A stretch of 64,000 nucleotides of DNA from Takakia lepidozioides. Lineage: Eukaryota > Plantae > Bryophyta. The stretch is taken from the NCBI GenBank assembly GCA_030704615.1, contig CM060734.1, positions 18,972,001 to 19,036,000 of the forward strand, given 5' to 3'. Below are positions 8,829 to 28,022 of this stretch, piece after piece (the first letter of the stretch is position 1; every line of letters starts with the position of its first letter). The notes beneath the pieces were generated by a model. It had not been told where the DNA came from. It ran no database searches and worked only from the letters and a program-made list of their open reading frames with translations. The position numbers and the translations under genes are program-made.

Positions 8829-8829
8829 C

Positions 8830-9860
8830 TTTTTTTTTTTTTTTTTTTTGTGAAAGGGGATGAGGCCCTTGTTTGTTTTATTGAATATTATTGAAGGGAA
8901 AAAAATTAAAACCCTTACATGCCCGTAGGCTGCCATGAGGCCTATCACACGATAAATGTGTTGGAGAATCCATGAGAATAGAGACCGGATGCCTGCCATG
9001 AGGCAAAGAGCTTAATTTTGTCTAGGACCTAGATCCGAAGCAGCGCCTAAGCTAGGGTTCTGACTTATGAGGATGAGACTGATGACGAAAAAAGGGGGGC
9101 GGTAAGACCAATATGACCAAGGTGACAGACGGATCGATGATGAGGAAGCCCGAACAGAAACCCTGAATGAGGGAAACACTGATTGCATGGAATCTAACCT
9201 AAGAACTGCAATCGAGCCCGAGAGGCCACCTTCACATGTTTCCAATTGATGTCTGATTTGTCAAATTCCAGAGATGCCGAAGATGAGGGCCCAGTGATGC
9301 CTCCAAGGTTCGGGAATTCCTCGAGGCCACTCGCATGAGCCTGCTTCAGTGCATCTGCAAATGAGTCCGTCCCTCCCCCATGTGTCCTGGAAAATGGCGA
9401 GGAGGGTGAACTGGCATTGAGGTTTCCTGGCGATTTCTGCACACATTTTTGCCCAAGCCAGTTTAGCAGCAACCGTCAAGTCAAAAAACACTTGAGTGAG
9501 TATGGCGGTGGCCGAGGTATTGTGCGAGTCCAAAGTCCATCTGCATCCGGCTTTCCATAATTGCCATAGAGTTGCAGATCTTAAGGCTTCAAAAACTGGA
9601 CAGTTTGTTGCTCTGGATTTTTTGTTTTGATTGTAGTTGAGAAGCAAGGCAATGGGCCCGAAAGGGGGTTGTCCCCAAGGGCGATAGAAGGGCAGGACTA
9701 GGTGCCAGATCGTCATTGGGGCAATGCAGAAAAGAAGGCAGTGTTCCAAGCTTTCAATCGTGTCTATTAAACAGCATTTGCACAGGAGAGCATCCTGGAA
9801 ACCTAGATATTGCCCTACCTTCAATACCCTGTTGGCAACTTGCCAGAGAATGTCCACATT
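8830..9860 (-). mobile_element. 5'-truncated LINE of a related family
   Basis: ORF 9261-9857(-) 'GQYLGFQDALLCKCC..ESLEHCLLFC..CPVFEALRSATLWQLWK' is homologous to the C-terminus of the first LINE. T20 at 8830-8849 is its poly(A) tail. Confidence 0.88.
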
Positions 9861-10278
9861 TTAGCTCTAGGAACCCACTCCTGCTCCAAGTAGTCACAAA
9901 ATTCACTTAGAGTGGGGTACTTGAAACGCAAATTCACAAGTTCGCACACCGCCCATGCTTCTCCTGCGTCGCCCTCGCTTTTTGACGCACTATACATGAT
10001 TTTAGACATGTCTTGTATGACACATGCACGCAAATCTGCATCTTTGATCTTAGACACGACATTCTTTTGTCATGCTCTCATCACATGCCAAAGGCATAGA
10101 AATACTGCAAACTGCCCCACACGGCCCTGACATAGAAAGACATGTGAGAACATTATAATGTGGAGAAGTGCAGAAAACCTCGGAATTTCAGAGAGGTGTG
10201 AATTGGCAATCACCTGATTGCTTTTATTTCAGCATCTGCGTCATCAACAATGAAAGCATGTGGGCACCATCCTGCTTG
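9850..10278 (-). pseudogene. Mutator-like transposase, downstream part (continues the gene at 30138-31644)
   Basis: Minus strand reads QAGWCPHAFIVDDADAEIKAI (second catalytic D), AVFLCLWHVMRA (CxxH) and FCDYLEQEWVP. It is truncated at the LINE fragment. Confidence 0.85.
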
Positions 10279-10725
10279 GGGGGCTGCTATTTCATGAGCC
10301 ATGAGCCATGAGCAGAGTCGTAAGTGTCGAAAAAAACATAAGCAGGACTATTTTCCGGAAATGAGTGTCCGTGGGAATAGGGTTTAGGGTGTCACGGTCA
10401 TAGGGGGAGAAGGACCTCCCGATGAAGGAGGTTCGACAATGTTTTCTAGAATTACATATTGAAAGGCAATGCTTCGCGAATGGTAGGGTGGTACTACTCT
10501 GTACAATGGGGGCCCATTTCAGCCTACCAGCCACTTGCAAAATCCACCCACACTCCCAATCCCAAACGAAATGAGGAATGATGCATTCTGGGAACGATGG
10601 ATACAGAATAGAACAAAAAGAGGGCACAATGGGGTTTTTATTGATCCACATGAATTGCATTTGAAGCACGTCTACTGTGCTGATTGTGCAAACAAATCTT
10701 TAGCCCTGTGCCTTCTGAATACAAG

Positions 10726-11439
10726 TCATGTTGTCAATGGGACTTCGACTGCTCTGAAAACTAGCTCATGAGTCATCGGGCTCCTCCAGGTAAACTGGAT
10801 TGCAGCCGTTGTACCGCCCCTGTTGATGTTCACCACAATGTCGTGCCCTTTAATCATACCACCATCGAATATGGAAAGCTTCACGTTTTTGTCGTCCACA
10901 CCAATGCGAATATCCCCACACAATGGAGAAGAGGAGCGCACTCCTTCAGGAGTATACGTCTCTCCGATGGAGTCCACCCACGTCCACTCGTAGCAGTTCC
11001 ACCGCAACTGCATAGCAGTGCGCATTCTTCTGCATGGGTGCCCATCGTAGCTGGGAAAATCGGAATCAAGGATGCGCAGGAGCCACTGACTCCTCAGACC
11101 AAGATCGTCACCCCGCTCGAAGGCGTAGTGGCCTGGGATATACTCAAAAGCGGACAATGTTTCCACATTCGAACCACTATCTTCTGTGTAAACTATGTAC
11201 CAGATAACGATGTCTCCCGATGTGGCCGAATACATTGCATAATCGAAGCCTCCATAAAGGCAGTTGTCCCGGTTCCGGAAGCACGACATCCTTGCAAAGG
11301 AGGACCTGAGAACGTCTTTGATGCCGATGACAATGACCTTGCGGACAACAACGAAGCCCTTAGATTTTCGATATGATGAGAAGCGGAAGAGCAGTGCGGG
11401 CTCCAATAATGGAGCATCTGGGTCCCACGTACCCACCAA
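10726..11439 (-). CDS. Unknown protein, paralogue 1 of a head-to-head pair
   Basis: Open 237-aa frame aligning end-to-end with 11850-12430(+): DYAM..SGDI, EY..G.Y.FERG, RWNC..WTW.D, DGG.I.GHDIVV, EL..RA.EVP. Confidence 0.7.
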   Translation of the reverse strand: MVGTWDPDAPLLEPALLFRFSSYRKSKGFVVVRKVIVIGIKDVLRSSFARMSCFRNRDNCLYGGFDYAMYSATSGDIVIWYIVYTEDSGSNVETLSAFEYIPGHYAFERGDDLGLRSQWLLRILDSDFPSYDGHPCRRMRTAMQLRWNCYEWTWVDSIGETYTPEGVRSSSPLCGDIRIGVDDKNVKLSIFDGGMIKGHDIVVNINRGGTTAAIQFTWRSPMTHELVFRAVEVPLTT

Positions 11440-11849
11440 TCATCATGTAACGTGTTCATCTCGCTCGCCAGTAGTGGATGAACCGATACCTCTTTCTCAT
11501 CCACGGGGTACAGTTTGAAATTTGCCACCGAAGTCCATCCCCCGGATGGGAATTCGGCGCCGCATTTACATCGAAGGGGGGATGGACTTCGTCGTCTCGA
11601 GTGGCTATAGGCCCACCTGGCACTTACTGCCCATAGTTTGCATGGCAGGGAAGGAAACTGAAACGGCTACATTCATGGAGCAGCCAATCTTCATCCGTGC
11701 AGGTTCCTGTAGGGGGGGAATTTAAATGTGCCCTGGAGTGTTTGTGAGGAATTGCAGCGTTTGCTTGAACTTCTTCCAGCCACCGCGCTGCTGCCTCCTC
11801 CATCCGGGAGCTGCTGTCATTGAGCGTACTCTACTAATCTTTTTCAAGG

Positions 11850-12430
11850 ATGTCGTGCCGCCGAAATCCTGCTGACTGCCCTTATCATGGCCACGATTAT
11901 GCTATGTTCAAACCAGAATCAGGAGACATCATTGTCTGGCTCTCTGTTTTCACTGACGCTTCTGGAATCAAGCGGGAGTCTTTGCGCGCAATGGAGTATT
12001 TGGAGGGCTATTACCGCTTTGAGCGAGGTGAGGGCGAGGGTCAATGCGGTCCGTGGGTCCTGAAAATTGTTGACCTCGATATATACCAAGCTGGAATGGG
12101 ATGCCGGACAGATCACGCACGGCCTCGCTTTGGCGCTGGAACTGCTGCCAGTGGACCTGGGAGGACGGCACCGGAGAAAACTATATTCGTGGAGTTCACT
12201 CCGCTCTTTCAGTGTATGGAGAAATTCGGCTGAGTTGCAAAGACGAATCGCACGTGCACATGAGGCCCACAGTGACCTTGTCAATGTATGATGGTGGTAT
12301 CATTGATGGGCATGACATTGTCGTCAGCTCCACCAAGGGCACCAGAACGACCACATTGCAGTTTACCTCGAGGTGCCGCATCAGTAATGAGCTTATTTTG
12401 AGGGCTATCGAAGTTCCGTCGACTTGGTGA
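11850..12430 (+). pseudogene. Unknown protein, paralogue 2 (one frameshift near 12100)
   Basis: ORFs 11850-12233 and 12101-12430 together align to the 10726-11439 protein. Confidence 0.7.
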
Positions 12431-12640
12431 CGCCCATGTAGAAGGAGGAAGGGCTTAGATTTGTCTAGAGTTGCTAAATGTGAGACACCGTGTTCGATCA
12501 ATAAAACAACCCATTGTACCTCACTTCTGTGTGCTGTGTTTCATTGTGTTCAAGAACTGCCGTAATTGGCCCACTGTTTATAATTTGTGGTCTCATTTCT
12601 ACAATGTGTCTGTCCACATGAATATATCATACTTGGAATT

Positions 12641-13402
12641 GGAAATGCAGCACCGCATTTCCATATTGGACCTTGAATTGTCCAAGCATGTCCAATCGCC
12701 AATGCTTGTCCATGTCCGTTTTGGAAATGCGGCACCGCATTTCCATGTCCGTCATCAAATTTTCTTATTGGACAATGGAATGCGGTGCCGCATTTCTGTC
12801 TAGCAAGACGGAATGCCCACACACATTTCCGTCCAAGGGTCTGGAATTGGACAAAATGCGGCGCCGCATTTCCATGTTTGGCAATCGAAAGTTCTTATTG
12901 TGCCGCATTTCCGTCCAGGGGTCTGGAATTGGACAAACAACGATGTCCGTTCTGGAAATGCGGCGCCGCATTTCCATGTACGTCATCAAATTTTCTTATT
13001 GGACAATGGAATGCGGTGCCGCATTCCCGTCCAGAATCATGGAATGCGGAGCCGTAGTTCCGTCGATGGGTCTGAAGTTGGAAAATCGTCCATCTCCAAA
13101 ATGGAAATGCGGCACCGCATTTCCATGTCCGCCATTTAAATAACGTGTTCGACCTCCGCATGCGGGGTGGCATTTCCATTTACCTCCATGGAAGGAGCTG
13201 GCAATCGGCAAAACTGTCGTGTCGAAAACGGAAATGCGGTGCAGCACCGCATTTCCGTTCGTCCGAACAGTTTCTGATGTCCAAACCATGAAACGGAAAT
13301 TGTTCTTGCCCTGGTTTTGGAAATGCGGTGCCGCATTTCCAAACGAGGTTTTTGCAGTTCCCACATTTCCGTTTCGACATGGAAATGCGGTGCCGCATTT
13401 CC
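12641..13402. repeat. Cluster of about ten copies of the 22-bp palindrome GGAAATGCGGYRCCGCATTTCC
   Basis: Copies at 12641, 12723, 12777, 12853, 12954 (perfect), 13008, 13103, 13230, 13319 and 13381. Outliers near 14709, 15952, 29499 (perfect) and 29643. Confidence 0.92.
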
Positions 13403-13538
13403 GATTTTGGGAGGGATGTGGTTTGGACGATGGTGTCGTTGAGAAGCACATGGGAGAGGGGACATGAACGACAGGGAGAATTTCCTTTATATACTCTGGA
13501 AGAGAATTTAAATGTACAGAGAGTTCATTAAAATTCTA

Positions 13539-15871
13539 CTAATATTGAAAATCATCACTATCGTCGTCTTGTCCTTGACTGTCATGCTCCACCTCCACCC
13601 CGTCATTGCCTTTCTCATGTCGAGCGGACTGCTCATTGGCCAGGCTTTCAAAAATCCCATCTTCTCCTTGCGGAACCGACCATCTCACCTCCGTTGGGTC
13701 GTCGTCCTCCCTGTCTGCATCGCTCCCATCCGCTGAATCACATATGAACTTTCGCACCCGTCTACCTGTCTCAGCTGCTACCAACTCTTTCCTTGTCCTT
13801 CTGTCCTCCCTAGCCCTCTCCAAAATCTGCTCTACTTTACTGGGATTCTCACATCGTCTAATCGCTGTATTTGCGAGTTTAGCAGCATAACTAGGAAGGG
13901 AGTAGTCCTTCACCGGGCTCGTCATGAAGTCGGCCCTCGCAAAGAACGGGACATTCGTCCTGGCAGGAAGTGTAGGCCCTACATGTTTCGACCCGGATCC
14001 TGGAATCCTGCACATAACAATCACCCACGAGACCAATGAGAACCACAGTCTGGAAATGCGTTTGACAAAAAATCACCCAGAAGGCTTTGCAAACTTACAA
14101 TGTTTGCACTCACTCGTATTCCAGGTTCTCCTCGGCATCAATGTCCACTGTCTCTTCCTCCGACTCCGACGAATCCGAGGAATCTTTGGCTTCGATGGGA
14201 GCCTTCACATTCCATTGAAGCCCTTCCAGATGGGATCCCCAGATGGATGTGTCCTCCTCGTAGGCAAAGAGGTGCCGGTCGGAAAATCGCCCAGCCCACA
14301 TTGAGGCACCTGTTACAATGCCATCCACTCATTGAAAAATATCCCTTCACACATGGCAAATTTGAACAGAATGAGAATTCACAGAACAACATAGTACAAG
14401 AATCTGCATACCTGTTCCACAGATGAGGTCCAGCACTCTGCCCTCCAGGTCAGTGCATGCCTCCATAATTGTCTGGATGAAGGCAGGGCTCCGAGTCCGT
14501 GAATACCGCAGGGGATCCGTTGAAGTGAGACTATGGGGGAGGAGTTCCTTGGGAATGTTGTTGAACAGGACGTCGTAGTCGATGGGGTTGCAATTCGGGT
14601 CAACCAACAATCCCTCCTTCTGGAAAGCAAAGGTCGAGTTCTCCTTCACAAAGCAGTATGCATCGAACTGCTTTGTCTGCATACACAGTGGGGAACGATT
14701 AGAAATCGAATGCGGCACCGCATTTCAAAACAGGTTACAAAATGAATGGAAGATTGCTAATGTCCTAATTACCTTCTTCCTTTCCGACCAAAGGCCCAAT
14801 GTGTTGATGCACGTCCACTTCTTCTTCAGAATTGGGACGGCGCTCTTGCGGGTCCACTTCGCAATTCCTGTCTCCGTGTTTTTGCCTCTACTCGCCAGGA
14901 CAACCACACAGCCTCTATCGTCCAACACCATGCGGGCGAGCCCAAATCCTTTCTTCCAAAAGTCCTCGGAGTACCTGTTCCAAGATGACAAACCTTGCAG
15001 TCCTTCCACAGGCTCTCCGTCCGGAATATCCAAGATGATCATATCGCAAGACCACTCTGTGGGTTTTCCTCCCCTCTTGCAATCCTTCCCTGCACACACC
15101 TTCTCAAAGAACGAGACCATCTTCAGAAACCCAGGGGTGTCGGAAGGCTCTGCTTCAGCCGCCTTCTTCAGTGCTCTGCCCTTCAGACCCTCCATGGTCT
15201 TGATGTATGCCAACTTGGTTGCCCGTCCGTCCAGAGCCGCCAAGAAACTCTCATTGACACACTGAACTATTGTTTCTGGCTCCACTTTCGGCCTCTTCAT
15301 TTCCACCAGCTCGAAAGGGTGCCCCCCCGGGGGGTTGAAGAGTGCCTTCTTGGCTGAGCCTGTTCTCATCCCTCTTGTGACAACGGTGGGCACAGAGGGT
15401 TTCGGCTGCGTTTCGGGGGAGTGGGCTGGTTTGCCTAGTCTCCATCGTTGTGCTCTTCGTCACCCTCTTCCTGCTCGTCTTCTTCGGTGTCACAACTGCT
15501 GCTCCTTGCTGGCGAGTCCTCTTCTTTGACCCCTTCTGTTGAGCCTGCACAGCTGCATCCACTGTCTTCTGTGCCATCTCAGCTGCCTTTCTGGATTGTT
15601 CCAGAGCAGCAGCGTCCGTTGCCAACTCAGGCCCAGCAGGGACACGTCTTTCCTTTCTCTTCTCCTCCGCTTTTGCGTGCAGATCTTTCTCCGATTCGTC
15701 AACAAGTCCGCCAGACATGTCCAGGTACCACGGACATCCAACGAGATGCGCGGCATGCCATTGTTTCTGCATCTCTGGTAGGTAGACACAGCTTGGTCCC
15801 GGCACGGTCCAAGCCATGAAAAACGGGGGCTCTTGCGCTAGGGCCCCTGTCTTAAGTAGCATGTATTTCAT
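13539..15871 (-). pseudogene. Spliced beta-class N6-adenine/N4-cytosine DNA methyltransferase-like gene with acidic flanking regions
   Basis: CDMIILDIPDG (DPPY-like motif IV), LARMVLDDRGCVVV, then RSPAFIQTIMEACTDLEGRVLDLICGT|GASMWAGRFSDRHLFAYEED (motifs X-I-II). GT-AG introns 14772-14677, 14411-14310 and 14113-14008 all splice in frame. Frameshift(s) near 15400-15500. A probable upstream exon lies at ~27716-27950, beyond the nested retroelement. Confidence 0.72.
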
Positions 15872-15972
15872 ATACGTGCAAGACAGTCAACATGCGTGAG
15901 CACAAGCTATGAGAATGTACTCGTAGAGTGCAACCGAAACGATAAAGTGCTAATGCGGTGCCGCATTTCCCA

Positions 15973-16289
15973 TGTCAAGTTATTTTACCACTAGTGTGAA
16001 ACTAGCTAGGAAATAGCTAGCTTTTACATATTGACATTTGGGATTGGCCCAAGTGTCAATCCAGGGGTCAAGGCAGATTTAGGCCCTGGAGTGGTTATCT
16101 TCACGGCAAGCGCGGAAGGCTCATCTTTCTCGAGTTGAGCCTCACCGCGCCTAGCTATGGCGCCGTAGTGTGGATTCCCCATGGCATGGGGTGCACTTGG
16201 CTTGACTTGTATTTGAGTGATGAGGTTATATATGCATGAGTTTATGCTTCAGATTTGTGAGCTCGTGCTTGTATTCTTCATCTTTATCA
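15973..16289 (+). repeat. Terminal repeat A1 (317 bp, TG...CA)
   Basis: Matches 27199-27515 with about 2 substitutions by eye. Also matches 62787-63113. Confidence 0.95.
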
Positions 16290-16305
16290 CTCGAGAAAGA
16301 TGAGC
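16289..16305 (+). promoter_or_regulatory. Putative self-priming primer-binding site
   Basis: ACTCGAGAAAGATGAGC, directly after repeat A, is the exact reverse complement of 16119-16135 inside A. No TGG-type tRNA PBS is present. Confidence 0.7.
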
Positions 16306-17820
16306 TCGTATCTGTGAATGCCAGATACGAGTTAGTTGTAGCACTTGTGGTTTTTGCTTGAGAATGAGAGAAACCAAGTTGTTATACAAGGAGCACCGTG
16401 GAGCTCTTGGTTGTTAGAAGCGGAGGCGATGTGGGTTACGAGGTGGTAGACCTTGGCATTCGATCTGCAGCTTTAGAGATGAAAGCACCATGTTGCAGGT
16501 AATTCCAGAGCACCTTGATGGTTTCAGATTGTGTACATGCATGAGCAAGCACGATTGGGAAGAGGACCAGTCAAGAGCAGGTTATAGTGGCTTTGGTGGC
16601 AAAACTGAGAACTGGACTTGGGAATGCGAGCTTTCATTGTGTGAAGGATTGCAAGACCAAGCGAAAGGGCTGATTTGGCTTGGGGCAAATCAGTGCACTT
16701 TGTGGAGTATGGTGAGATTGGGTTTCAATCTCGAGCTTCAGCATTGAGAGGGCTCTTGTCATGGCAAGAGCAGGGCTGGAACAGGAACTAAGAGGTGCGG
16801 CAAGGCCATGGAATGTGCACCTAGGGTTTCAGAGCTTGGAAGAAGAGCTCTTGCACCACAAGAGAAGTGTCTTGTGGCTGGAAATGTAAGCCTTAGGGTT
16901 TCAGGAGCTTGGCAAAGGCTGTGGAGTGCTTAGTCTTGTCTTAGAGAGCATCAAGGAGCCAAGGAGCCAAGATAGGGGGCTGATATCTCTTGTGTGAAGA
17001 GGTTGCATGTGTGGAGCATGTATTCAGCTCATTCAAGCTTCCATCTTCAAGCTTGGAGGGCAAGCAAGGAAGAGGGAAGGGCTGACTTCCCTTATGTGAG
17101 GGCAATGCATGTGTGGAGCATGCTATCAGCCTGATGAAGGCTTGCACTTTCAGGTGTGGGAGTGCAAGAAAGGAAGGAAGGGGCCGGTTTCCCTGTAGGG
17201 CATGTGGAGCATGCTTTCAGCCTGCTGAAGTTTGTATTTTCAGGTTTGTGGGTGCAAGAAATGAAGCAAAGGAGCTGATTCTCTTATGGTGAGAGTGGGG
17301 CATGTGTGGAGCATGCCTTCAGCCCATTGAGGCTCTTGTTTTCAAGCTTTAGAGAGCTAGAACGGAAGGTCTAGGGCTGGTTTCCACTTGGAGTGAAAGA
17401 AAAGCACTTGTAGGGCCTATGTGAGTTGGGGTTTCAACTTCAAGCTTGAAGGGAGCGCAACTCTTGAAGCAGCAGGTGTAGGGGGCTGGAATAGGCTCTA
17501 AGACAGATGCTATGGCCAATGAGAGTGCTTGAATGAGTGCTCACAAGGGCTGGGAACCAGCAGGGCTTGGTTGTTTGCCATTGAGTTTAGTGGCGTGTTT
17601 GGGGAGGCTAAGTGAGAAAGAAGGCTTGGTTTGTGGCAACCACCTCATGGCTTAGGGCTACTATGGTGGTGTGTGGGAGCCGAAAGAGCAAGAATACCTT
17701 GCTGATTTCCTCACAGCCGCCATAGCTTGGTGGAAAGAAGCCTAGAGTCCAAGAGACACAAACCCTAGCTTGGCGTGGCTAAACCCCTTGGAGAAATGGC
17801 TAAACTGCCAGAGCGGCCAT

Positions 17821-19140
17821 GGATGGGGCTGTGACGGGCTGTCCTGTGGCCTTGGGGGCTGTGCCGGGCTGCGCCGGTGGCCTTCGGGCTGTGACGGGCT
17901 GTGAGGGCCTGTGACGGGCTGCACCGGTGGCCTTGGGGGCTGTGATGGGCTGTGAGGGGCTGTCACGGGCTGTGCCGGGCTGTGCCAGTGGCCTTCGGGG
18001 CTATGACGGGCTGTGACGGGCTGTGAGAGGCTGTGATATAGGCTGTGCCCGTGGCCTTTGGGGCTGTGATGGGCTGTGAGGGGCTGGGACAGGCTGTGCC
18101 TGAGGCTTTGGGGCTGTGACGGGCTGTGAGGGGCTGTGACAGGCCGTGCCTGAGGCCTTTGGGGCTGTGAGGGGATGTGTCAGGCTGTGGCGGGCTGTGA
18201 CAGGCTGTGCCCTTTGGCCTGTGGGGCTATGACGGGCTATGTGGGCTGTGACAGGCTGTGCCATGTGGCCTGTGGGGCTGTGACAGGTTGTGACAGGCTA
18301 TGCCCTGTGGCCTGTGGGGCTGTGACGGGCTGTGACAGGCTGTGGCGAGCTGTGACGGGTTGTGAGGGGTGCTGTGACAGGCTGTGGCGGGCTGTGACAG
18401 GCTAAGCCAGTGGCCTGTGGGGCTGTGACGGGCTGTGAGGGGCTTTGACAGGCTGTGGCGAGCTGTGATGGGCTGTGAGGGGCTATGACAGGTTGTGGCG
18501 GGCTGTGACAGGCTAAGCCGAGTGGCCTGTGGGGCTGTGAGGGGCTGTGACAGGCTGTGCCCTGTGGCCTGTGGGGCTGTGATGGGCTGTGACAGGCTAT
18601 GGCGAGCTGTGATGGGTTGTGAGGGGATGTGACAGGCTAAGCCCAGTGGCCTGTGGGGCTGTGATGGGCTGTGAGGGGCTGTGACAAGCTGTGGAGGGCT
18701 GTGACAGGCTGTGCCTGTGGCCTGTGGGGCTGTGACGGGCTGTGACAGGCTAAGCCCAGTGGCCTGTGGGGCTGTGAGGGGCTGTGACGGGCTGTGACAG
18801 GCTGTGGCAAGCTGTGACGGGCTGTGATGGGCTTTGCACTTTGGCTTGTGGGGCTGTGATGGGATGTGTGAGGGGCTGTGGCCTTTGGGGCTGTAACCCC
18901 TGTGACCTGTGTAGGGTTGTGATAGGCTGTGCCATGTGGCCCGTGGGGCTGTGACCCCTACGACTTGTGTAGGGCTGTGACAGGCTGTGCCATGTGGCTG
19001 TGGGGCTGTTGTAACGGGCTTGTGAGGGGCTGTGACAGGCTGTGGCCTTTGGGGCTGTGATGGGCTTGTGACAGGCTGCGGCGTGTGGGGGCAGTGACCC
19101 TGTGACCTGTGTAGGGCTGTGGCTGTGTGGGGCTTGTGAC
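17821..19140 (+). repeat. G-rich ~10-bp minisatellite (GGCTGTGACG/GGCTGTGAGG) in the retroelement leader
   Basis: About 1.3 kb of degenerate ggctgtga-core units with higher-order blocks. Confidence 0.95.
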
Positions 19141-19639
19141 GGCTGTGTGACCAGTGATCTGTGTGGGCCTTGTGTTGGTCTGTTGGTGGCCCGTGTTTGA
19201 CCTGTGGACGGCCCGTGCTGACTCGTGGAGGCATTGGTGGACTGCCTAAGGACTGACATGTGGTCTTGAAGGCCGAATTTTGAAGCTCGTGGAGGGCGGT
19301 TGAGGAGTATCTTCATGATATCCCATGGTCATGCAAGTACAGGTGTAGGCTATGTTAGGAACTTAGTATTCCAAACCATAAGCCGCAACAGGTTCTCTAC
19401 CCGGTTACCTTATGGAGGGGGGTAGGGACTGTTCATGACCGGTTGAGTGTCAACACGGAGGTGTCACTAGTTGCTGGGGACAGTGCCGGTTCGAGCACTA
19501 GCAATACTAGTGGGTACACGAGATGAGGTGTGGCGGTTTTAGGCCACTTCACCTCCTATGTCTTCTACAGAAGGTTCTGATTCGGATTGTGAATCAGGAG
19601 GACTTATACCGGCGGTAAAAGTTGTTTCCTTACCATTGT

Positions 19640-21050
19640 TGTGGGACACAATGGAGGAGATGTATGGAGCTACCAAGGGGCCACGAAGGTACTCTGGGCG
19701 GTGGGCACCATCGAGTTGGATGATTTTATCCAAGAGTTTGATAGTTGGGGTGATTTGCAGCAAATGCGCAATCCACAACTATTACGCCTTTCATGGCATG
19801 GAAGGGGCTGTTTCAGCACCTTGAGGGGCCGCCTATGGATGATTACCATGAGTTCAGGCGGGGGCATGAGGTTGAGATCAAGGAGTGGAGGATGTACTGG
19901 TCACCCGACTATGTCTCCATTACTAGGGGTACTAGAGCCACGAGGGGAGGGCAGTGGCTGCACCTGCCGCTGCACTGGCAGCTTCAGCAAGTAGCAGAGG
20001 GACTAGTGGGACTGGTGGTACAATAGCTACGACGTCCACCCAAGCCACTACCGCACCAGCACTAGTACTCGTGCCTGCATTCAACCCTGTTGTGGAGTTC
20101 TCGAAGAGTTGAGAGGAAGTACAAGGGGGGTGAGGACAGAGAAGTTGCGGAGCTTGCAAGAGTTCCAACGGAAGCCGACCGAGAGCTTGAGGGAGGCTTT
20201 CACTCGCATGAGACGCTTGATAAATGTAACCCAAGGGATTACGGAAGCTCAGGCAGTCCAATTCTGGTATGGGATATTGGACAAGGAGCTGAGGAGAAGG
20301 GTGCGGGATGATGCAACTCTCCTACAAGCGGCCCAACCCACCTTAGCAAATGTGTTTTGCTGGTAGAGCGGATAGAGCTCAACATGGTGGAGGAACGAGT
20401 GGTCATGGGGGGATTTGCTAAGGAGACACCACGGGTAGTGGTGCTCCTAGCCAACCACTACCTCAACGTGCTCAAGGCAACAAGGGGGCTTAGGTGAAGC
20501 TCAGGGAAGGGCAGAGAAGACCTCAGATGCAGGGGTCTCTCCCTTCATTTGCTGGCCAACAACGGGCGGATGTGGTGTGCTGGACATGTCGAGGACCCCA
20601 TGTCAAGAATGATTGCCCAGAGGGAGGCAAAGGGCCGGCACATGCATAGCCTGCACAGTTGCAGTGTGGGCATTGTGGCAAGCACGCGCATGGAGGGGCC
20701 CAGTGTTATGGTTTGCATCCTGAGTTGCGCCCAGGCCAGTTCCCAAGGGAACAATGGTGGCCAGGGGCGAGGTGGAGTAGCCCAGAGAGGACGAGGTGGC
20801 CAGCCACGAGGTGCAGGCCAAGGGCAAGCTCAACATGGCCAAGGACGCGGAGGTCAGGGTGTTGACCAAGGCATGGCCAACCGGCTTCAACAGCTAGAGC
20901 AAAGGCTCGTTGCCATGGCTACAACTCAGGTGGTACCGGCTCTAAGGCCGGATGGTCCACCTCCTGCTCCTGAGGGAGGAGAGATATGGGAGGCATGGGA
21001 TTCATGGTGGAGCAGCAGCACTACCACTAGTGCAGGTGGAGTCTGCTGCA
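19640..21050 (+). pseudogene. Retrotransposon Gag with zinc knuckles (frameshifted)
   Basis: ELDDFIQEFDSW, LQEFQRKPTESLREAFTRMRRL (gag-like), CWTCRGPHVKNDC and CGHCGKHAHGGAQC (CCHC), and a Gly/Gln/Arg-rich tail. Confidence 0.8.
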
Positions 21051-21629
21051 GCCGTGACTCGAGGAGCAGCACGAGGTGCAGAGGTGGAGTTGGATCCACA
21101 GCGTAGGGAGGCAAGCCGTCAGGCTAGGTTCCTCAGTCATTCACATTGGCGGAGACAGTGTCGACGCCATCCATGGCACCTAGTTCTCGCCCGACTGTTA
21201 CCGAGGCGGAGGTTACTATGCCATTAGGAGAGCTACACGGGTAGCACCACTACCTAGTGTTGCCAAGGCTACGGCAGCTAGTGTGCTGCTAGGAGCGGCC
21301 ACATCTGTGTGCCAGGCTCCATTGTTCTCGGCTACCATGATTGCGACGCCGGGGGTAAGACCAGCTGAGGTGTTCAGGTGGCAGCTACACCTGGAGAGGG
21401 AGTGGGGAGATTACTTCATCTCTGCGGAGATAGTGGGAGGTGTAGTGCCGGAGGGATCCTCGGATTTGAGGGTCAAGACTGCCACGGCGGCGCCATGGCA
21501 AGCTGCAGCTGCCAGGTTGATGGAGCTGTCAGCTAGGCCATTGAGCGGCCATGGTGACACCTGGAGTTGTCAGTTAGACAACCAGGATGGCATTTTCTGT
21601 TTGAGTGGACCGGCAGGCAAGAGGTTACC

Positions 21630-21970
21630 GGCCACTGCGGGTCTTGTTGGACTCGGGAGCTCAGCCATTGATGTTGGGCAGAGCTGCTATTGCAGGCTTG
21701 GGCCTCACGGAGGCGGATATGGAGCCTTGTCCTTTCCAGATATAGACGTCTCTGGGAGGATCGGAGCAGGCTCGGGGCATGAAACGGCGTGTGAGTGGCT
21801 ATCAGACTACGACCGGATCACCCTATAGATGGCTCAGTGATGCGAGTCAAGGCCATTGTGACAGACGCGGTCTCATACGATGTCCTGGTTGGTGGGGCAG
21901 TGTTGTACCCCATGGGCTTCACCCTGGATTTTTGGGAGGAGTCAGCTTCCTATAGGCCTGCATGGCAGTC
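21630..21970 (+). pseudogene. Retropepsin aspartic protease
   Basis: RVLLDSGAQPLMLG at ~21640-21680 and YDVLVGGAVL at ~21876-21905. Confidence 0.8.
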
Positions 21971-22357
21971 AGGGGAGGGCCAGCGTGAGCAGCTCCATGT
22001 GACGTTCATAGGAGGAGTTGCGGTTGCCCAGCGAGGAAGATGCCGACACTAGCAGCATTCACAGCGGCAGTGAGTTGGCCTAGAGAGTTGCTTGAGGGCA
22101 ACGCCATTCAGAGGATGTGCCACCTCTGGAGAGCAGGATGACATGTATGGTATGGCGGAGTTGCCTACCATGGTTGCTCAGACTCCATTGTGGGGCACGA
22201 GCAAGGATTTGCAGCGGGATGCTAATCAACGGGTGCAACAAGCTTGGGTGGAGGCTTTTGTACCGTCAGGAGAGGAGGAGAGTGCGGGGATTGACCAGGA
22301 CCACCTCAGTGTCTCCATTGGACCACCGCACCTATGTGGTGGCAGTATCCGGATGAA

Positions 22358-23300
22358 GACATTTGTCTTCTGGACTTGTTTGGCGGGATCAGCACCGATT
22401 GGCTGCTGTGTTACAGGCAGGTGTACGAGTTGGGCGTTACCTGTATGTGGAGAGGGATGATGACTGCACGACGCATTTCACTTCGCCATGTTGCTCAGTT
22501 GGTGCAGCGGTACCCTGAGTTGTTGTCGGTGTCTGCAATTCGTGGATATTAGCAGCCTTGCCAGCAGACATTTCATTGCTAGGGGCGCAGGATTTGGAGC
22601 AGGTTGGCTCCATTGATCTGGTAGTGGCAGGTGGCCCCTGCCAAGGGCATTCATCAGCCGGGCATGGCAATGGATTGCGAGACTCAAGGTTGGGTTTGTT
22701 TGGGAGATGGTGGTGGTTTTGCGCCACTTGCAGCTTCATCAAGCTGTATCTCAGCATACATCTTGGAGAATGTGCCATTATGGGCGATTCTCGGGCCAGG
22801 GTGATGGCGAGTGTGCATCAAGTCTGGTCGTGGCTTGGGTCAGCAGTGTGTGCTAGATGCAGCTACAGGGGGGTCACGGGCTCATCGTCCACGACTATGG
22901 TGGACTAAACTTGATGCCACACGCACTGCTCACGTGTCATTTGATGGGGTTTTGCAGCGGCCAGCACATCTCACATTTGGATAACATTTAGACACAGGGA
23001 GGCAGTCTCAGCGTGTGAGACACGATGACCGTTCGCCTTTGGCAGTGGTCAACAAGGGGGTCAACCACGAGCAGCATTACCTACACTGCTCAGCTTCCCA
23101 GGATCGCATGCTTTCCGGGATAGTGGACCTGGCCTCTTGTGGGATGCTCAGTTGCAGCAGTAGTGGAGCCTAATGCGACAAGCGTGAGCGGGGCAATGGG
23201 TTTTACCACTGGTACCACGGCGGTGTCGTATCTTTCTGAGGCATCACGTCGTCAAGTGTTGGGGCAAGCAATGGATCTCAATTGCTTGACCTGGATTATC
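22358..23300 (+). pseudogene. DNMT3-like C5-cytosine DNA methyltransferase domain within the retroelement polyprotein
   Basis: Motif I LLDLFGGI (22367-22390), II YLYVERD, IV DLVVAGGPCQGHS (PCQ 22636-22644), VI YILENV (ENV 22766-22774), VIII DAA..SRAHRPRLWWT(N)L, IX-X ERAMGF..GTT..LSEASRRQVLGQAM. Several frameshifts and a stop. Confidence 0.9.
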
Positions 23301-23739
23301 AGCTTGGCTCTGGTATGAGCAACGCAGGTGCAGAGTACACTTCCCTCAATGGTCTCTCTGCCTACCGAGACGGTACAGGCAGTGAGTGGGGGCGAGCATG
23401 TGAGGACCACGGGGGCATGCATCCATGGCACATGTGGGAGGTGCTCGAGGTTCAGAGGGAGTTGGCAGCCAAGGCGGCTGTGATGGATGAGGTTGGGGAT
23501 TCTTCTGGGTTGGGGAGGTCCTCAAGGATGAGATGATGGGGCAGGATGAGGATTGTCATTGTCATGACTGAGCAGGCAGGGGAGTACTGTTCAAGAGGTT
23601 GCAACATAGCAAACCACTGGACGCGTCCTCTACCTCTAAGCCACTGGACTTAAGATTGCAGTTACGGAGGACAATGGGGAGCCTGACATTGGACCCATTG
23701 TCACCGGAGGAGAGAGACGACGTATACGGCGGTTCTGAG

Positions 23740-25110
23740 GGCTTACAGGAATTGCTTTGCCTTCAGTTTGAAGGACTTAGGAGCACTGAAGGGTCAAGAG
23801 GATCCGTATTGAGTGGACCACTGACACGCCAATCTTTCGGAGAACCTATAGATACAATGACAGGGAGAGGTCTTTGATCAGATGAGGACTCAAGATCTCT
23901 GGGAGGAGGTTTGGTGGAGCTCTCTGGTGGAGATTATGCTTCAGCACAGTGATGCCAGCCAAGAAGGATGTCTATGGCAATTGGACGGAGAGACGTATGT
24001 ACGGTGGATTATCGGCTTGTAAATCGCAGGGGACCAAGTCCGATAAGGATGTCATGCCAACACTAGAGGAGATCTTTGATGCCATCGGGCATGCTAAGGC
24101 CTTTAGCACTTGGGATTTACGATCCGGATATCACTAGTTGCCAATCAAGGAGGCAGACAAGCAGAAGACGACTTCTGGGTGTTTAATGAGCACGGCAAGA
24201 TGGCCTATATCAGTGGCGGGTTTTACCATTGGGCTTAAGAATGATCCTGCAGAGTTTCAGAGAGTCATGGATAGGATTCTAGGAGGGGTGGACTTTGCTC
24301 GGTGCTACATAGATGACATCATCATCTTTAGTGTTACGATGGAGGAGCATGAGAGACACCTTCAGGTGGTATTGGAGCGCTTGAGAGCGCACGGATTGAA
24401 GTTGCATCCGGGGAAGTGCAAGTTTTTCCACAACCAGATTGAGTATCTGGGTCACATGATATATCCTGGAGGATTGGGGGTACAGCAGACTAAGGTAGAG
24501 GCCATTGCACAAATTCCACGCCCCACGGATGTGAGCCGAGTTCGAGCTTTCATGGGGTTGGCAAACTATTATAGACGGTTTGTCAAGGGATTTAGTACCA
24601 TTGCAAAGGCTCTAACCAAGCTGACCAAGGTGGACCAGGAGTGGCAGTGGAAAGATGAGCAGGAATGAGCTTTTCAAGAGCTCAAGACGAGGTTGACCTC
24701 GGCGCCTATCCTGAGACGACCTATTAGGGGGCGTCCCTTTCAGCTGCATACGGATTGGAGCATGCTGGGGCTTGGAGCGGTGCTCACACAGGTGGATGAT
24801 GAGGGAGGGAGAGAGTTCGTAGTGGCTTATGCTAGCCGCTCGAACAACGCTGCAGAGGCTAAGTACAGCTCATATGAGGGGAGAGTGCTTAGCTGCAGTG
24901 TGGGCCGTGGCACACTTCAGGTGCTATCTATACGGCAATCTTTTCACCCTTGTCACGGATCACCAGCCACTCAAGTGGTTGATGGAGTCAGACAAGCTTA
25001 CAGGGAAGCTTGCACGGTGGGCACTCATACTCCAGGAGTATGACTTTCAGGTTGTGCATCGACCAGGTTTGGTCAATCGGGATGCGGATGGATTGAGTCG
25101 CAATCCATGC
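23740..25110 (+). pseudogene. Ty3/gypsy reverse transcriptase and RNase H
   Basis: DLRSGYH, GLKNDPAEFQR, YIDD (24306-24317), KLHPGKC, FMGLANYYRRF, LHTDWS, GLGAVL, ECLAAVWAV, TDHQPL, ADGLSR. Confidence 0.95.
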
Positions 25111-25439
25111 ATGAGCCAGCAGGATGACACTGGAGCTCGGTGGCATGGTGAGACGGACGAGGAGATGGTGCCGGGATGGCACGCATCTGCATTTTTGTGT
25201 ATCTTGGCATCGGGAGGTCAGGTTGGACCTACAACAGAGATGACTGTAGACGGAGTGTCTGAGGACCCTGAGGCTAGTGATGAGCCAGGTGGTGCCAGAG
25301 ATACATGATGAGGATTCGGCTGTGTTGGACTACCTCCGCACGGGAGACACGACAGCCACTGTGACTGCCAGGGAGAGGGATCGGATCCTGCAACGAGCCA
25401 AGAGGTTCAAATGGGAGGGGATACACCTACTTTGAGTGT

Positions 25440-26530
25440 GGGAGGATGGTCAGGTGAGGATTGTGCCTCACCCCACACAGCGTGCACGTTTAGTGCGGCA
25501 TGCCCATGAGGAGTTGGGGCATTTTGGAGTGTGACGCACTCACAGTTTATTGCAGGAGCAGTATTGGTGGCGTGGTATGCATACAGAGGTGCAACAGTTC
25601 GTGGCTAGGTGCATGGTGTGTGACAGGGTGCGTGCTTCATTCAACGCCCCTATACCACAGTTTCATCCTTTACCAATCATGGGATTGGGCTACAGGTGGA
25701 GTCTTGACTTCGCAGGACCGTTGCCACTGACTATGCGCCACCACATATATGTATTGGTGATGGTGGAGCACTTCTCCAAGTGGATTGAGTTGGTTCCATT
25801 GCCTGACAAGGCTAGTGAGGGGGCTGCGTATGCATTCTTGGATCGTGTGCTTAGCCGATTTGGTGCTCCAGCTGAGGTACTCACGGACCAAGGGAGAGAG
25901 TTCTTGGGGGAGTTTCAGGTTTTGTGTGATAAAGCCTTGATAGACCACCGCACCACTTCTCTGGATCATCCTGAGGCCGATGGCTTAGCAGAGAGAGTTG
26001 TTCAGACGGTGAAGAGGGGTTTGCGCAAGTATGGCTTGCAGAAGGGACACCTAGGAGATTGGGATCTTCAGGTTCCTTTGTTAGCCATAGGCTACAGGTT
26101 CAGCAAACAAGCATCACTTGCCTCCTTCTCACCATATTTCCTTCTCTTTGGCCGAGAGCCGGATTTGCCTGCAGCCATTCGTAGGGACACTGCTCAAGTC
26201 CTTAACCTTGATGATCCGGACGTGTGGGTACGTGCATGTGATCAGCGTGCAGAGTTGTTCAAGAAAGTCATGCCCATGGCTTTTGAGAACCTTGCCATTG
26301 CACAGCACCGTGATACGTTGAGGTATGCCACTATACGTGGTGGAGGATATCGTCCTGGGGTTCGGAGGTTTAGCCCTGGTGACTATGTTTATTTGCAGCA
26401 GACTGCTCCTACGACTCTGGATGTTACTGCAGGGCGTGTTATTCTGAGGGTTCGAGAGGTGTTGCCCTCAGGGGTCCTGATCTTAGAGGTCGTCGGGATG
26501 GCATGACTTGGAAGGACCATGTGCGTAATT
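25440..26530 (+). pseudogene. DDE integrase (HHCC zinc-binding plus rve core)
   Basis: HEELGHFG...CMVC, SLDFAGPL (D), TDQG (D), GLAERVVQTVK (E), SPYFLLFGR. The core 25550-26506 is open. Confidence 0.95.
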
Positions 26531-26604
26531 GTGCGCCATGTCACCTTCCCAATGTCGATGGCAGAGTTGACCCAAACTTGGCAGTGGTACCTGCAGGTTT
26601 GAGG

Positions 26605-26743
26605 TGCATGCTCTGTGGGTCTGCCAAAGGGGCAGCCACCATGCCGGTGTGTGATCGATGCTCAAGGGGTTGGCATATGGGATGCTTGACACCACCTCTT
26701 GAGAAGGTTCCTGACGGAGATTGGTTGTGTCCACACTGCTTAG
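26605..26743 (+). CDS. C-terminal PHD finger of the integrase
   Basis: CMLC...VCDRCSRGWHMGCLTPPLEKVPDGDWLCPHC gives a complete C4HC3 pattern. Confidence 0.92.
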
Positions 26744-26997
26744 GATAGTGACAGTGGACATGACTGGAGGCAGCTAACAAGACATGGGAGGCCAAGCTCA
26801 TAGGAGTCAATACATGAGATCCCAAGCTCAAGTTCACAGGTTGCAAGACGGCGACTAACGATGGGGCAATTCTTGCACCCGGCCTCTTGATCTATCGAGT
26901 TTGAGTGTAGTAGGGATAGTGGTGGAGGACTTAGTGAGGCTATGGTCACTATCACATCTTGTGGCTACCTGGACTTAGAGGGACCTAAGCACCAGCT

Positions 26998-27006
26998 AGG
27001 GGGGCG
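26998..27006 (+). promoter_or_regulatory. Polypurine tract (short)
   Basis: AGGGGGGCG followed by AT and the TG that starts repeat B1. Confidence 0.6.
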
Positions 27007-27008
27007 AT

Positions 27009-27704
27009 TGTGTGGACTAGTGACTGCCATAGTGGGCAGCATAGTGGCAGCCTAGTGAATGACTAGTTGTAGCCTAGTGGTTGGACTAGTGGCTAGACTA
27101 GTGGTAGACTAGTGGTATACTAGTGTGTGGTGTGCACATGTGTTGTGTGGTTTTGGACAGCGATGTAGTTGTGTAGCGATATGTATGCGCACGACAGCTG
27201 TCAAGTTATTTTACCACTAGTGTGAAACTAGCTAGGAAATAGCTAGCTTTTACATATTGACATTTGGGATTGGCCCAAGTGTCAATCCAGGAGTCAAGGC
27301 AGATTTAGGCCCTGGAGTGGTTATCTTCACGGCAAGCGCGGAAGGCTCATCTTTCTCGAGTTGAGCCTCACCGCGCCTAGCTATGGCGCCGTAGTGTGGA
27401 TTCCCCATGGCGTGGGGTGCACTTGGCTTGACTTGTATTTGAGTGATGAGGTTATATATGCATGAGTTTATGCTTCAGATTTGTGAGCTCGTGCTTGTAT
27501 TCTTCATCTTTATCATTGTGTGGACTAGTGACTGCCATAGTGGGCAGCATAGTGGCAGCCTAGTGACTGACTAGTTGTAGCCTAGTGGTTGGACTAGTGG
27601 CTGGACTAGTGGTGGACTAGTGGTATACTAGTGTGTGGTGTGCACATGTGTTGTGTGGTTTTGGACATCGATGTAGTTGTGTAGCTATATGTATGCGCAC
27701 GACA
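27009..27704 (+). repeat. 3' repeat block B1-gc-A2-t-B2
   Basis: B1 and B2 are 188 bp each with about 5 differences by eye. A2 is 317 bp. The B1/A2 junction is the palindrome GACAGCTGTC (27193-27202). Confidence 0.95.
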
Positions 27705-28022
27705 TCCATACTAACCTCATAACCCAGCTTTTGCATACAACGGGAGCTGGGCTTCACCTGTACACAATTCGCATTGCAGCTTTTCCCGCCCCCTCCTGGT
27801 GTGTAAACTCCACACTCCTTCTTGTTGTCTGTAGCTCCCTGGCGAAGAGGTTGTTCTTGTACGCACATCTGAAACGTGTCACGTAGTCCGTCTTCTGCCG
27901 CACATCTGGTGGACGTAGCGACGGCCACAACAGAGGACATCGACAGAGCAATCATGCAGCAAGCCACGTACTACAAGTTCATGAGCGGGAAACAATAGGG
28001 CTTTGGGCCGGACAGGGAGGAA

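Follow-up and report, generated by a model that had tools for sequence, protein, structure and literature searches.

How does a Gypsy-type retrotransposon that encodes a DDE integrase come to be inserted with split direct repeats in place of two LTRs? The element that raises this question occupies positions 15973–27704 of the window, a 64,000-nucleotide stretch of Takakia lepidozioides DNA. We address its anatomy, its coding content, its relatives and its termini in turn, and then weigh the routes by which it may have been inserted.

The end repeats are split around an internal copy of the joined termini

A repeat search, BLAST and direct reading of the sequence all gave the same order: A1, an internal region, a polypurine tract, B1, the dinucleotide GC, A2 and B2. 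A1 (15973–16289, on the plus strand, as are all repeats and coding features described below) starts with TGTCAAG, is preceded by sequence other than B, and is identical to A2 (27199–27515) at 315 of 317 positions (99.4%; repeat search and BLAST). B1 (TTGTGTGG…GCACGACA) and B2, which ends in CGACA, share 97.4% identity; direct reading places them at 27008–27196 and 27516–27704, and the repeat search and BLAST bounded the match at 27007–27196 and 27515–27704. The spacer between B1 and A2 is GC (27197–27198), while A2 and B2 adjoin exactly, with no extra base between them. The original prediction, whose A…B-A-B positions proved correct to within 1–2 nt by repeat search and BLAST, had set a lone T between A2 and B2; this T (27516) is instead the first base of B, since the same T stands 3' of the polypurine tract ahead of B1. 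With lengths of 317 and 189 nt at 97–99% identity, a chance origin of the repeats is excluded.

The window element is a real Gypsy-type retrotransposon with split end repeats, not two LTRs: B precedes A1 in no copy, either in the window or among the relatives, and none is bounded by two identical flanking LTRs. The DIRS-order trait that the element does display is a set of split direct repeats together with a further copy, inside the element, of its two joined ends. The two repeats can nonetheless be read as the parts of a single LTR. The polypurine tract (AGCTAGGGGGGCGA, 26994–27007) lies directly 5' of B1, an arrangement also seen in the moss, Marchantia, L085 and K. nitens elements, and A1 comprises part of the promoter, the presumed transcript start at a motif designated p, and R-U5. 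With the polypurine tract marking the start of B and a covarying primer site (described below) marking the end of A, B-GC-A corresponds to a primer-bounded LTR, which agrees with the earlier proposals that B+A has the anatomy of U3-R-U5 and that the inserted copy is circularly permuted relative to the form with B+A LTRs.

The primer site resembles a self-priming site

The minus-strand primer site, P (CTCGAGAAAGATGAGC, 16290–16305), begins with the first base past A1. It is a 16-nt perfect complement of p (GCTCATCTTTCTCGAG, 16119–16134), a motif inside A that is followed by a conserved TTGAGCC and is presumed to be where the genomic RNA begins and to act as its self-primer. RNA folding pairs p with P (z = -7.8), and 10 of the 16 pairs show compensatory change on both sides across lineages; in the alignment, 91.7% of the p–P cells are paired in register, as opposed to 34–51% when the two segments are slid against each other. 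Perfect complements of 12–16 nt starting at the first base past A1 occur in four lineages, with the transcript start being a presumed one, and a TATA-like box lies 27–32 nt upstream of p in L086 and, by eye, in Marchantia and the window. No tRNA-type TGG… site was found in P. The original prediction had placed the primer site correctly, after A; rather than a tRNA-type PBS, P looks, from its sequence, like a self-priming site as in Tf1.

A degenerate Ty3/Gypsy element with a Dnmt3-like methyltransferase

The window copy, 11.7 kb long and defective, carries at least six frameshifts in tblastn comparisons with the ORFs of the near-intact relative L034; it is dead and therefore uninformative on activity. 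Most of its extra length over the 9.1–9.2-kb moss relatives lies in the leader (16977–19134), in the form of three ~100-bp repeats (16977–17368) and a 10-bp minisatellite (GGCTGTGAC/G, 17824–19134). Further downstream, a gag remnant with a CCHC zinc knuckle (20578–20733; translation CGHCGKHAHGGAQC; tblastn with residues 369–438 of L034 ORF1) is followed by a frameshift-broken aspartic protease (21632–22007; tblastn against L034, whose homologous part matches Pfam Asp_protease_2) and by a Dnmt3-like C5 cytosine methyltransferase that is broken over three frames (22331–23312; Pfam and tblastn). The latter is located within the gag-pol coding region, between the protease and the reverse transcriptase. 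A piece of it (22558–22908) matches PF00145 with E = 1.2e-5 (1.8e-13 for its L034 counterpart), and its best matches among solved structures are DNMT3A, 3B and 3C (E = 2e-7 for DNMT3A/3B).

The reverse transcriptase and RNase H (23670–25233; Pfam and tblastn) are frameshifted and match RVT_1 (2e-19), RT_RNaseH (1e-18) and RT_RNaseH_2 (5e-16), the last two, as in L034, being the matches that bear on a probable grouping of the reverse transcriptase with those of Gypsy. They are followed by the integrase (25283–26488), which is composed of an H2C2 zinc finger (Integrase_H2C2, 5e-6) and an rve core (1.3e-13), and by a C-terminal PHD finger (26494–26739; PF00628, 6.9e-10). Alignment shows that the D,D35E triad is kept, with D at 25706–25708, D at 25886–25888 and E at 25991–25993 (D58, D118 and E153 as numbered in the piece 25535–26503). 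The integrase is 84% identical to that of Calypogeia and 56% to that of K. nitens. In both the window element and L034 the PHD finger occupies the position at which chromoviruses have a chromodomain, and the rve-PHD architecture recurs in most relatives. Pfam gave no match to Phage_integrase or another tyrosine recombinase in the window pieces scanned or in the two L034 ORFs that span gag to PHD; Pfam and alignment together agree with the original prediction of an rve integrase with D-D-E and no recombinase. The domain order protease, reverse transcriptase, RNase H, integrase is found in the window, in L034 and in intact polyproteins of 2350 amino acids. The element is a Ty3/Gypsy retrotransposon with gag, protease, a Dnmt3-like methyltransferase, reverse transcriptase, RNase H, a DD35E integrase and a PHD finger.

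An element of this kind has been described from K. nitens. KnitGypsy-Dnmt3 was reported to combine Gypsy domains with repeats arranged as in a DIRS element, A-coding-B-A-B (de Mendoza et al. 2018, Nat Commun 9:1341, PMC5890265, Fig. 4c legend), and the layout is accordingly not new. That paper assigns the acquisition to the K. nitens lineage, and the passages of it consulted give no account of termini, target-site duplications, primer site, palindromic junction or integration route. Its features as given there, namely a Dnmt3-type methyltransferase inside the polyprotein, Gypsy domains and A-coding-B-A-B, are all present in the window element. At the locus of the K. nitens protein KFL_005000010 the 3' end reads PPT-B-GC-A-B and has the same GACAGCTGTC junction as the window, and the integrase and PHD finger of the two are 56% identical, a comparison limited to that part by a contig cut at the integrase. 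Compared with KnitGypsy-Dnmt3, the window copy is degenerate, has a minisatellite-expanded leader and resides in a different host; its relatives come from Marchantia, Calypogeia and metagenomes associated with mosses. It is a defective copy of a streptophyte Ty3/Gypsy lineage of the KnitGypsy-Dnmt3 kind.

The layout is the normal form of the lineage

Rare as the layout is, and given that short repeats can be mis-assembled, it could in principle have come from a single rearrangement at this locus, from nesting of one insertion in another or from mis-assembly of a BA…BA element. The same layout was found at three Marchantia polymorpha loci (L088 and L092 are in the chromosome-scale Tak-1 assembly), at one Klebsormidium nitens locus (L001, with a PPT-B-GC-A-B 3' end) and at ~17 independent moss-metagenome loci, for which 17–18 independent 3' ends read B-A-B and 10 5' ends had a single A; L085 likewise possesses it. 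The window itself holds a second copy of the family, cut by the window end (62787–64000), in which an A repeat (62787–63113, 92.7%) has sequence other than B on its left, with the primer site and then the leader on its right. Order and junctions agree between this copy, K. nitens, numerous metagenome contigs and M. polymorpha assemblies of chromosome scale, and related loci each have their own flanks and target-site duplication. The original prediction had named ordinary BA…BA copies as the sign of a one-off event; none was found in ~90 related loci, and the layout is family-wide. A one-off event or an assembly artefact is already refuted by these loci and retains a negligible probability.

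The integrated arrangement A-internal-B-GC-A-B is the normal form of the lineage. It is about as common as an A-internal-B form (17 independent loci compared with ~16), and its A2/B2 junction varies very little from copy to copy. No A-B-A-internal-B arrangement was present among ~15 5' ends examined. A related family has left a solo A-B unit in the window (52309–52657; A ~70%, B tail 86% by BLAST), as expected where A1 and A2 of an A…BAB element recombine with each other.

Termini and target sites point to a DDE integrase

By direct reading, the window element is flanked by CCCA (15969–15972) on the left and TCCA (27705–27708) on the right, which match at three of four positions and represent a degraded target-site duplication. 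Perfect 4-bp duplications flank nine relatives (TCTC, AAGG, CATA, AATG, GGTT, CCCT, TGTT, TACA and TGTG), and the element termini are TGTC…GACA in all lineages. The TG…CA ends and 4-bp target duplications point to insertion by a DDE integrase. Insertion by DIRS recombinases is not known to leave a target duplication. Movement in trans by the tyrosine recombinase of a DIRS, PAT or Ngaro element, with the integrase as a passenger, would accord with an A…BAB order that is otherwise known only in recombinase elements; this is highly improbable, as nine perfect duplications together with TG…CA ends are characteristic of a DDE integrase, the catalytic residues are kept, the integrase lies within long open reading frames in intact relatives, and a recombinase was found in no copy scanned.

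The two termini meet once more inside the element. At the B1/A2 junction, the end of B, the GC spacer and the start of A form a 10-bp att-like palindrome, GACA-GC-TGTC (GACAGCTGTC, 27193–27202, direct reading), which equals the element's two termini joined. The same 10-mer is found at this junction in every lineage checked (K. nitens, moss, L085, L086/L087 and Marchantia). An internal att-like site, as originally proposed, fits both this palindrome, conserved from Klebsormidium to liverworts, and the 4-bp duplications.

A putative route through end-joined cDNA

On these sequence features, the most likely reading (with a probability of about 0.55) is that ordinary reverse transcription would generate B-GC-A LTRs, after which the cDNA ends would be joined and the integrase would cut at the internal palindrome. 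Transcription would start at motif p in A1, and the 5' end of the RNA would fold onto P and prime the minus strand in a Tf1-like manner, with the usual strand transfers then yielding a linear cDNA whose LTRs are B-GC-A. The natural ends of this cDNA would not be used by the integrase; the end of A would be joined to the start of B, in a 2-LTR circle or by repair, and the integrase would cut both strands after CA in GACA|GC|TGTC within one LTR. Such a cut would leave recessed CA-3'OH ends with 2-nt overhangs, a normal substrate for strand transfer, and insertion would produce A-internal-B-GC-A-B. This would be the replicating form, as it alone retains the downstream A that the first strand transfer requires, and A-internal-B copies would be sterile by-products.

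In a 2-LTR circle the att site is present twice, in identical form, so that random opening predicts A-B-A-internal-B as often as A-internal-B-A-B. The former is unseen, and the scheme consequently needs an extra assumption, either a fast A x A collapse to A-internal-B or a preference for cutting in one LTR. Two further observations weigh against the scheme: A-internal-B copies are about as frequent as the full form, and locus L087 has the arrangement A-B-A…B-A-B-A, which the scheme in its simple version does not predict.

The bias towards A-internal-B-A-B would follow directly from an alternative, DIRS-style restoration of the ends without a circle, which never gives A-B-A-internal-B. Here an RNA running from inside A1 to inside B2 would be copied end to end and the outer parts of A and B rebuilt on the B1-GC-A2 template, giving a linear cDNA that ends at the start of A and the end of B and is used by the integrase in the usual way. 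Consistent with this, the internal junction carries exactly both terminal sequences, like the ICR or B1A2 in DIRS/PAT (PMC7192593), and a near-constant A2/B2 junction is expected if it is passed on through RNA. However, end restoration offers no reason for B to start exactly at the polypurine tract or for A to end exactly at the covarying primer site, which is itself absent after both B1 and B2; copying would moreover run beyond the start of A into GC-B1 with no obvious stop, so that this route, too, would require the integrase to cut the palindrome. We regard it as unlikely.

Extending the preferred reading, ordinary reverse transcription followed by end joining and a cut at the palindrome, to the whole group, we tentatively propose that the clade from Klebsormidium to liverworts and mosses may have moved its integrase site from the cDNA ends to an LTR-internal palindrome. 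Productive integration would then depend on prior joining of the cDNA ends, in a 2-LTR circle or its equivalent, and on the integrase opening the molecule at the internal site. If so, the clade would be the first among LTR retrotransposons to integrate obligatorily from end-joined cDNA, which would here not be a dead end, and would represent an integrase-based convergence on the DIRS layout.

Comparison with known systems

Troyka shares with the window element its status as an unusual Gypsy-like lineage with non-standard termini. The original prediction had described it as having split repeats and lacking an integrase; the reverse holds on both counts, Troyka elements having ordinary LTRs, CG…CG termini, 3-bp target-site duplications and an integrase, in animals (Kojima 2025, PMC12440569). 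The window element, with TG…CA ends, a 4-bp duplication and split repeats, falls outside this group.

With PAT/Ngaro/TOC1-type DIRS elements the likeness is one of architecture: the same order A1-internal-B1-A2-B2, with the joined termini repeated internally. In contrast to their tyrosine recombinase, the window family possesses a DD35E integrase, 4-bp target-site duplications and TG…CA ends, as well as a polypurine tract and a primer site that bound B-GC-A. As in Tf1 and sushi, the primer site right after the 5' repeat complements a sequence within that repeat, located ~30 nt past a TATA-like box; the LTRs of Tf1, however, are ordinary, and self-priming in the window family is suggested by complementarity and covariation.

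The closest parallel to the proposed cut comes from retroviruses. The integrases of foamy virus and HIV-1 are reported to cleave palindromic LTR-LTR junctions (Delelis et al. 2005, 2007; PMC1180852, PMC1905944), so that, as would be the case here, an integrase of retroviral type generates usable ends by cutting within a palindrome in which two ends abut. The viral junction arises from joining of the cDNA ends and represents a side path at most, whereas in the window family every LTR contains the palindrome from the outset, and no other site appears to be used.

Split direct repeats of the window element

The element at 15973-27704 of the window carries the split repeats where the original prediction had placed them. 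Repeat searches and BLAST showed that A1 (15973-16289) and A2 (27199-27515) differ at only 2 of 317 positions, and that the B pair is 97.4% identical, with five differences in the window. Direct reading of the sequence refined the borders of B to 27008-27196 (B1) and 27516-27704 (B2), and A2 directly abuts B2 with no base between them. The additional T proposed at this joint is where B starts, as is clear from B1, in which the same T comes directly after the polypurine tract (PPT). This tract, AGCTAGGGGGGCGA, lies immediately 5' of B1, while a GC spacer separates B1 from A2 and forms the center of a perfect 10-bp palindrome (GACA-GC-TGTC, 27193-27202). The element starts with TGTCAAG and finishes with CGACA. 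Its left flank is CCCA and its right flank TCCA, which match at three of four positions. The plus strand is G-rich across 16-28 kb, as expected of one oriented element. In the leader (16977-19134), three ~100-bp repeats are followed by a minisatellite of ~1.3 kb with a 10-bp unit (GGCTGTGAC/G); together they largely account for the length of this copy (11.7 kb, compared with 9.1-9.2 kb for moss relatives). The window additionally contains a second copy (62787 to the window end; A 92.7% identical), which starts with A and is preceded by unrelated sequence, and a solo A-B of a related family (52309-52657). Elsewhere in the window (3622-8015, plus strand) lies a LINE-like non-LTR retrotransposon, in which one ORF contains an Exo_endo_phos endonuclease (4247-5416) and the next one RVT_1 (5490-7001).

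The layout is shared by relatives

The integrase piece of the window copy found its best matches in the liverworts Calypogeia fissa (84%) and Marchantia polymorpha, and also matched many moss-associated metagenome proteins and one protein of the alga Klebsormidium nitens (56%); nearly all of these proteins combine rve with a PHD finger. The methyltransferase region matched many annotated M. polymorpha proteins as well as intact 2350-aa polyproteins. These matches assign the contig to a liverwort-like plant, not to human. Using the integrase as query, we fetched 80 metagenome loci, compared each with itself and mapped A and B. In these loci, 17-18 independent 3' ends read integrase-PPT-B-GC-A-B, and at ten 5' ends A is single. 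The repeats of two copies from M. polymorpha Tak-1 (L088 and L092) are 96-100% identical, and the 3' end of the K. nitens locus likewise reads PPT-B-GC-A-B. The same end occurs in L085, a lineage farther removed (integrase identity 50%); no A1 was found in the 10 kb upstream of it. In no copy examined does B precede the 5' A. The ordinary BA…BA form, which the original prediction had named as its refutation, is absent from the related loci. The A…BAB layout is thus a family trait, with chance or artefact ruled out by the repeat identity and the independent loci.

Several other loci were set aside. The Calypogeia loci L002 and L083 and the Marchantia locus L084 are too old, nested or masked for their repeats to be read. 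An attempt to recover a full K. nitens copy returned a cluster with one member. The best representative hit (L089) belongs to another genome and has the junction-like sequence GACAACTGTC without a B pair, and the remaining hits are 1.5-kb contigs.

Coding content

The broken reading frames of the window copy were searched piece by piece, as they stand in the sequence and not as a consensus or repaired version, and spliced gene models of the fetched loci were left unjoined. Pfam recognized a C5 cytosine methyltransferase (22558-22908), RVT_1, both RT-linked RNase H families, Integrase_H2C2, rve and a C-terminal PHD finger. Comparison by tblastn with a nearly intact relative (L034) placed gag/CCHC at 20578-20733, the protease at 21632-22007, the methyltransferase at 22331-23312 (around the Pfam piece), RT-RNase H at 23670-25233, the integrase at 25283-26488 and the PHD finger at 26494-26739, the last three also being matched by Pfam. 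At least six frame changes across gag-pol indicate that the window copy is dead, and its integrase piece keeps D, D and E at a 35-residue spacing. Such damage in gag-pol contrasts with terminal repeats that are still 97-99% identical, and it is probable that the copy was defective by the time of its insertion and was moved in trans.

The relative L034 has two long frames with one in-frame stop between them, the first encoding gag-protease-methyltransferase and the second RT-RNase H-integrase-PHD. Pfam found no recombinase domain in either frame, and the closest solved structures to its methyltransferase are DNMT3A/3B. A single in-frame stop divides the two frames at the same place in L034 (5083-5085) and L031 (4661-4663), separate metagenome contigs that may share flanks; programmed read-through could occur at this stop. 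In two related polyproteins (P0146 and P0148) the entire polyprotein lies in one frame.

Integrase-type insertion marks

Complete elements at nine loci are flanked by perfect 4-bp target-site duplications (TSDs). Some have the full A-int-BAB form (L019, TCTC; L029, AAGG; L062, CATA; L059, AATG; L088, GGTT; L092, CCCT), and others a short A-int-B form (L006, TGTT; L015, TACA; L065, TGTG). The termini are TGTC…GACA in all lineages, and the internal B/A junction consists of those two termini joined via GC. In old copies this spacer has decayed to AC, GT or AT, as expected of a methylated CAGCTG.

Repeat borders coincide with the putative primers of reverse transcription

In every lineage checked, B starts directly 3' of the polypurine tract, and A ends where a sequence begins that is exactly complementary to a motif within A. 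The motif (p) and the site (P) are GCTCATCTTTCTCGAG and CTCGAGAAAGATGAGC in the window (16119-16134 and 16290-16305), CAGTTCTTCGAG and CTCGAAGAACTG in Marchantia, AACATAGTTCTTTGAG and CTCAAAGAACTATGTT in moss, and AACTCTCAGCCAAAT and ATTTGGCTGAGAGTT in the metagenome locus L086. In an alignment of eight copies, 10 of the 16 pairs of the p-P helix have changed on both sides, 91.7% of the cells are paired (34-51% with the partner shifted) and the covariation score exceeds that of every shuffle. This covariation, to which only three lineages contribute, backs the pairing in a supportive rather than conclusive manner. The predicted fold of the window RNA (16119-16312) also pairs p with P (z = -7.8). 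A tRNA-type primer site was rejected, as the sequence after A1 does not start with TGG and the self-complementary motif fits better. To judge from sequence, p and P have the same anatomy as in the self-priming Gypsy element Tf1, and B-GC-A is consequently the LTR expected from reverse transcription. A TATA-like box lies 27-32 nt upstream of p in L086; by eye it is also present in Marchantia and degenerate in the window. The A repeats of Marchantia (L088 4980-5007), moss and K. nitens (L001 1818-1852) additionally carry a copy of the primer site just upstream of p, which would allow p to form a local hairpin inside A; this arm is absent from the window copy.

A candidate integration route through an internal site

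Standard strand transfers from these primers would generate a linear cDNA with the structure B-GC-A-internal-B-GC-A. The integrated copies run from the start of A to the end of B, with an exact A-end/B-start joint inside. Most simply, the natural cDNA ends would be joined and the integrase would then cut after CA, on both strands, at GACA/GC/TGTC within one LTR. Such cleavage would expose at each end a recessed CA-3'OH with a 2-nt overhang, which is what integrases normally use for strand transfer. Retroviral integrases are reported to cleave palindromic LTR-LTR junctions (PMC1905944, PMC1180852). A-int-B-GC-A-B would be the replication-competent form, since the first strand transfer needs a downstream A and no other product retains one, and B2 would be a by-product. 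We give this route a probability of roughly 0.55. The att-like internal site of the original prediction holds up as the best-supported mechanism, given the palindrome, the TSDs and the primer-bounded borders, while the intermediate is one that we infer.

Several observations are not yet accommodated by this route. An end-joined circle carries two identical sites, so the opposite permutation (A-B-A-int-B) should be equally common; it occurs in none of about 15 5' ends. A DIRS-style restoration of the repeats would directly account for this one-sided permutation but gives no reason why the repeat borders coincide exactly with the polypurine tract and the primer site, and we consider it unlikely. 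The A-int-B form with intact TSDs also equals the full form in frequency, and it lacks the downstream A required for strand transfer. Such copies could arise from one-LTR circles, from cuts at both sites, through deletion between the B repeats or, finally, if A-B-A-int-B quickly collapses by A x A deletion, the last of which would also explain the roughly 1:1 ratio of the two forms. About 16 independent moss copies (L005, L006, L013, L015, L020, L026, L047, L065 and others) read integrase-PPT-B-flank without A2-B2, and the complete ones among them are A-int-B with perfect 4-bp TSDs.

Two metagenome loci have other arrangements that the route does not yet explain either. L087 (4590-14801; ENA ERZ25039523, contig_43623) has an intact 2352-aa ORF with A-B-GC-A to its left and B-GC-A-B-A to its right, showing mosaic identities (outer A pair 97.8%, inner BA pair 90.6%) and a 5-nt deletion in the last junction. 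L086 (1-16272; ENA ERZ25067493, ctg159469_5x_c) is an intact element in a head-to-tail array with a period of 8262 bp and 99.9% identity, with one palindrome (GACAGCTGTC) in each unit; no A-end/B-start joint falls within 1-16272. A tandem array in the chromosome and a multimeric circle are the two possible readings.

Extra bases occur at some A2/B2 joints (~20 nt at L019 10838-10858, the same insertion as L024; GAA at ~3050 in L023) and resemble the aberrant junctions of retroviral LTR-LTR circles. In moss copies the first base of B2 is A in about half, while that of B1 is always G, a difference explained by ordinary methylation-driven decay. This base was discarded as a sign of newly made versus inherited junctions, owing to the CAG (CHG) context of B2 and to polymorphism at one orthologous locus (L044/L053/L058). 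The mismatches between A1 and A2 and between B1 and B2 (2 and 5 in the window) are too few to trace templates. L070 and L073 were considered as one locus in both forms, produced by deletion after insertion, but their flanks diverge after 9 nt; these different insertions share AAGTCAATG right after the B end (2196-2204 and 2751-2759, respectively).

Comparison with known systems

Split direct repeats are tied by textbooks to tyrosine-recombinase retroelements, and LTR-LTR circles of integrase elements are regarded as dead ends. The family contradicts the first rule, and its anatomy suggests that it contradicts the second as well. It is common in bryophytes, including the model liverwort M. polymorpha, where eccDNA can be sequenced, 5' RACE and assays of the integrase are feasible and marked elements can be tested. 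LTR finders built around a pair of identical terminal repeats will annotate these elements wrongly.

The window element is not a DIRS element, given its TSDs and the absence of a recombinase from the pieces scanned. Nor is it a Troyka: members of that group encode an integrase, have ordinary LTRs, end in CG…CG and make 3-bp TSDs (PMC12440569). Its kind is already in the literature: KnitGypsy-Dnmt3 of K. nitens is a Gypsy element with a Dnmt3 inside Pol (de Mendoza et al. 2018, PMC5890265), and the legend to Fig. 4c of that paper describes its repeats as arranged like those of a DIRS element. This legend, on a charophyte alga, is the sole published mention that we found in the parts of the literature consulted; a text search returned no other paper using the name, and a literature search no bryophyte report of this Gypsy/DNMT3 family. 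A Dnmt3 domain and the A…BAB layout define this kind, and the window element has both; it is also related through its integrase, these three points being what the comparison covers. It extends the KnitGypsy-Dnmt3 family to land plants. As the Dnmt3-like methyltransferase and the PHD finger were carried along, the methyltransferase capture, which had been assigned to the K. nitens lineage, must either predate that lineage or reach beyond it. Five features come from the present analysis and go unmentioned in the relevant passages of PMC5890265: target duplications of 4 bp, termini of the form TGTC…GACA, a conserved internal palindrome, a candidate self-priming site and a class of A-int-B copies.
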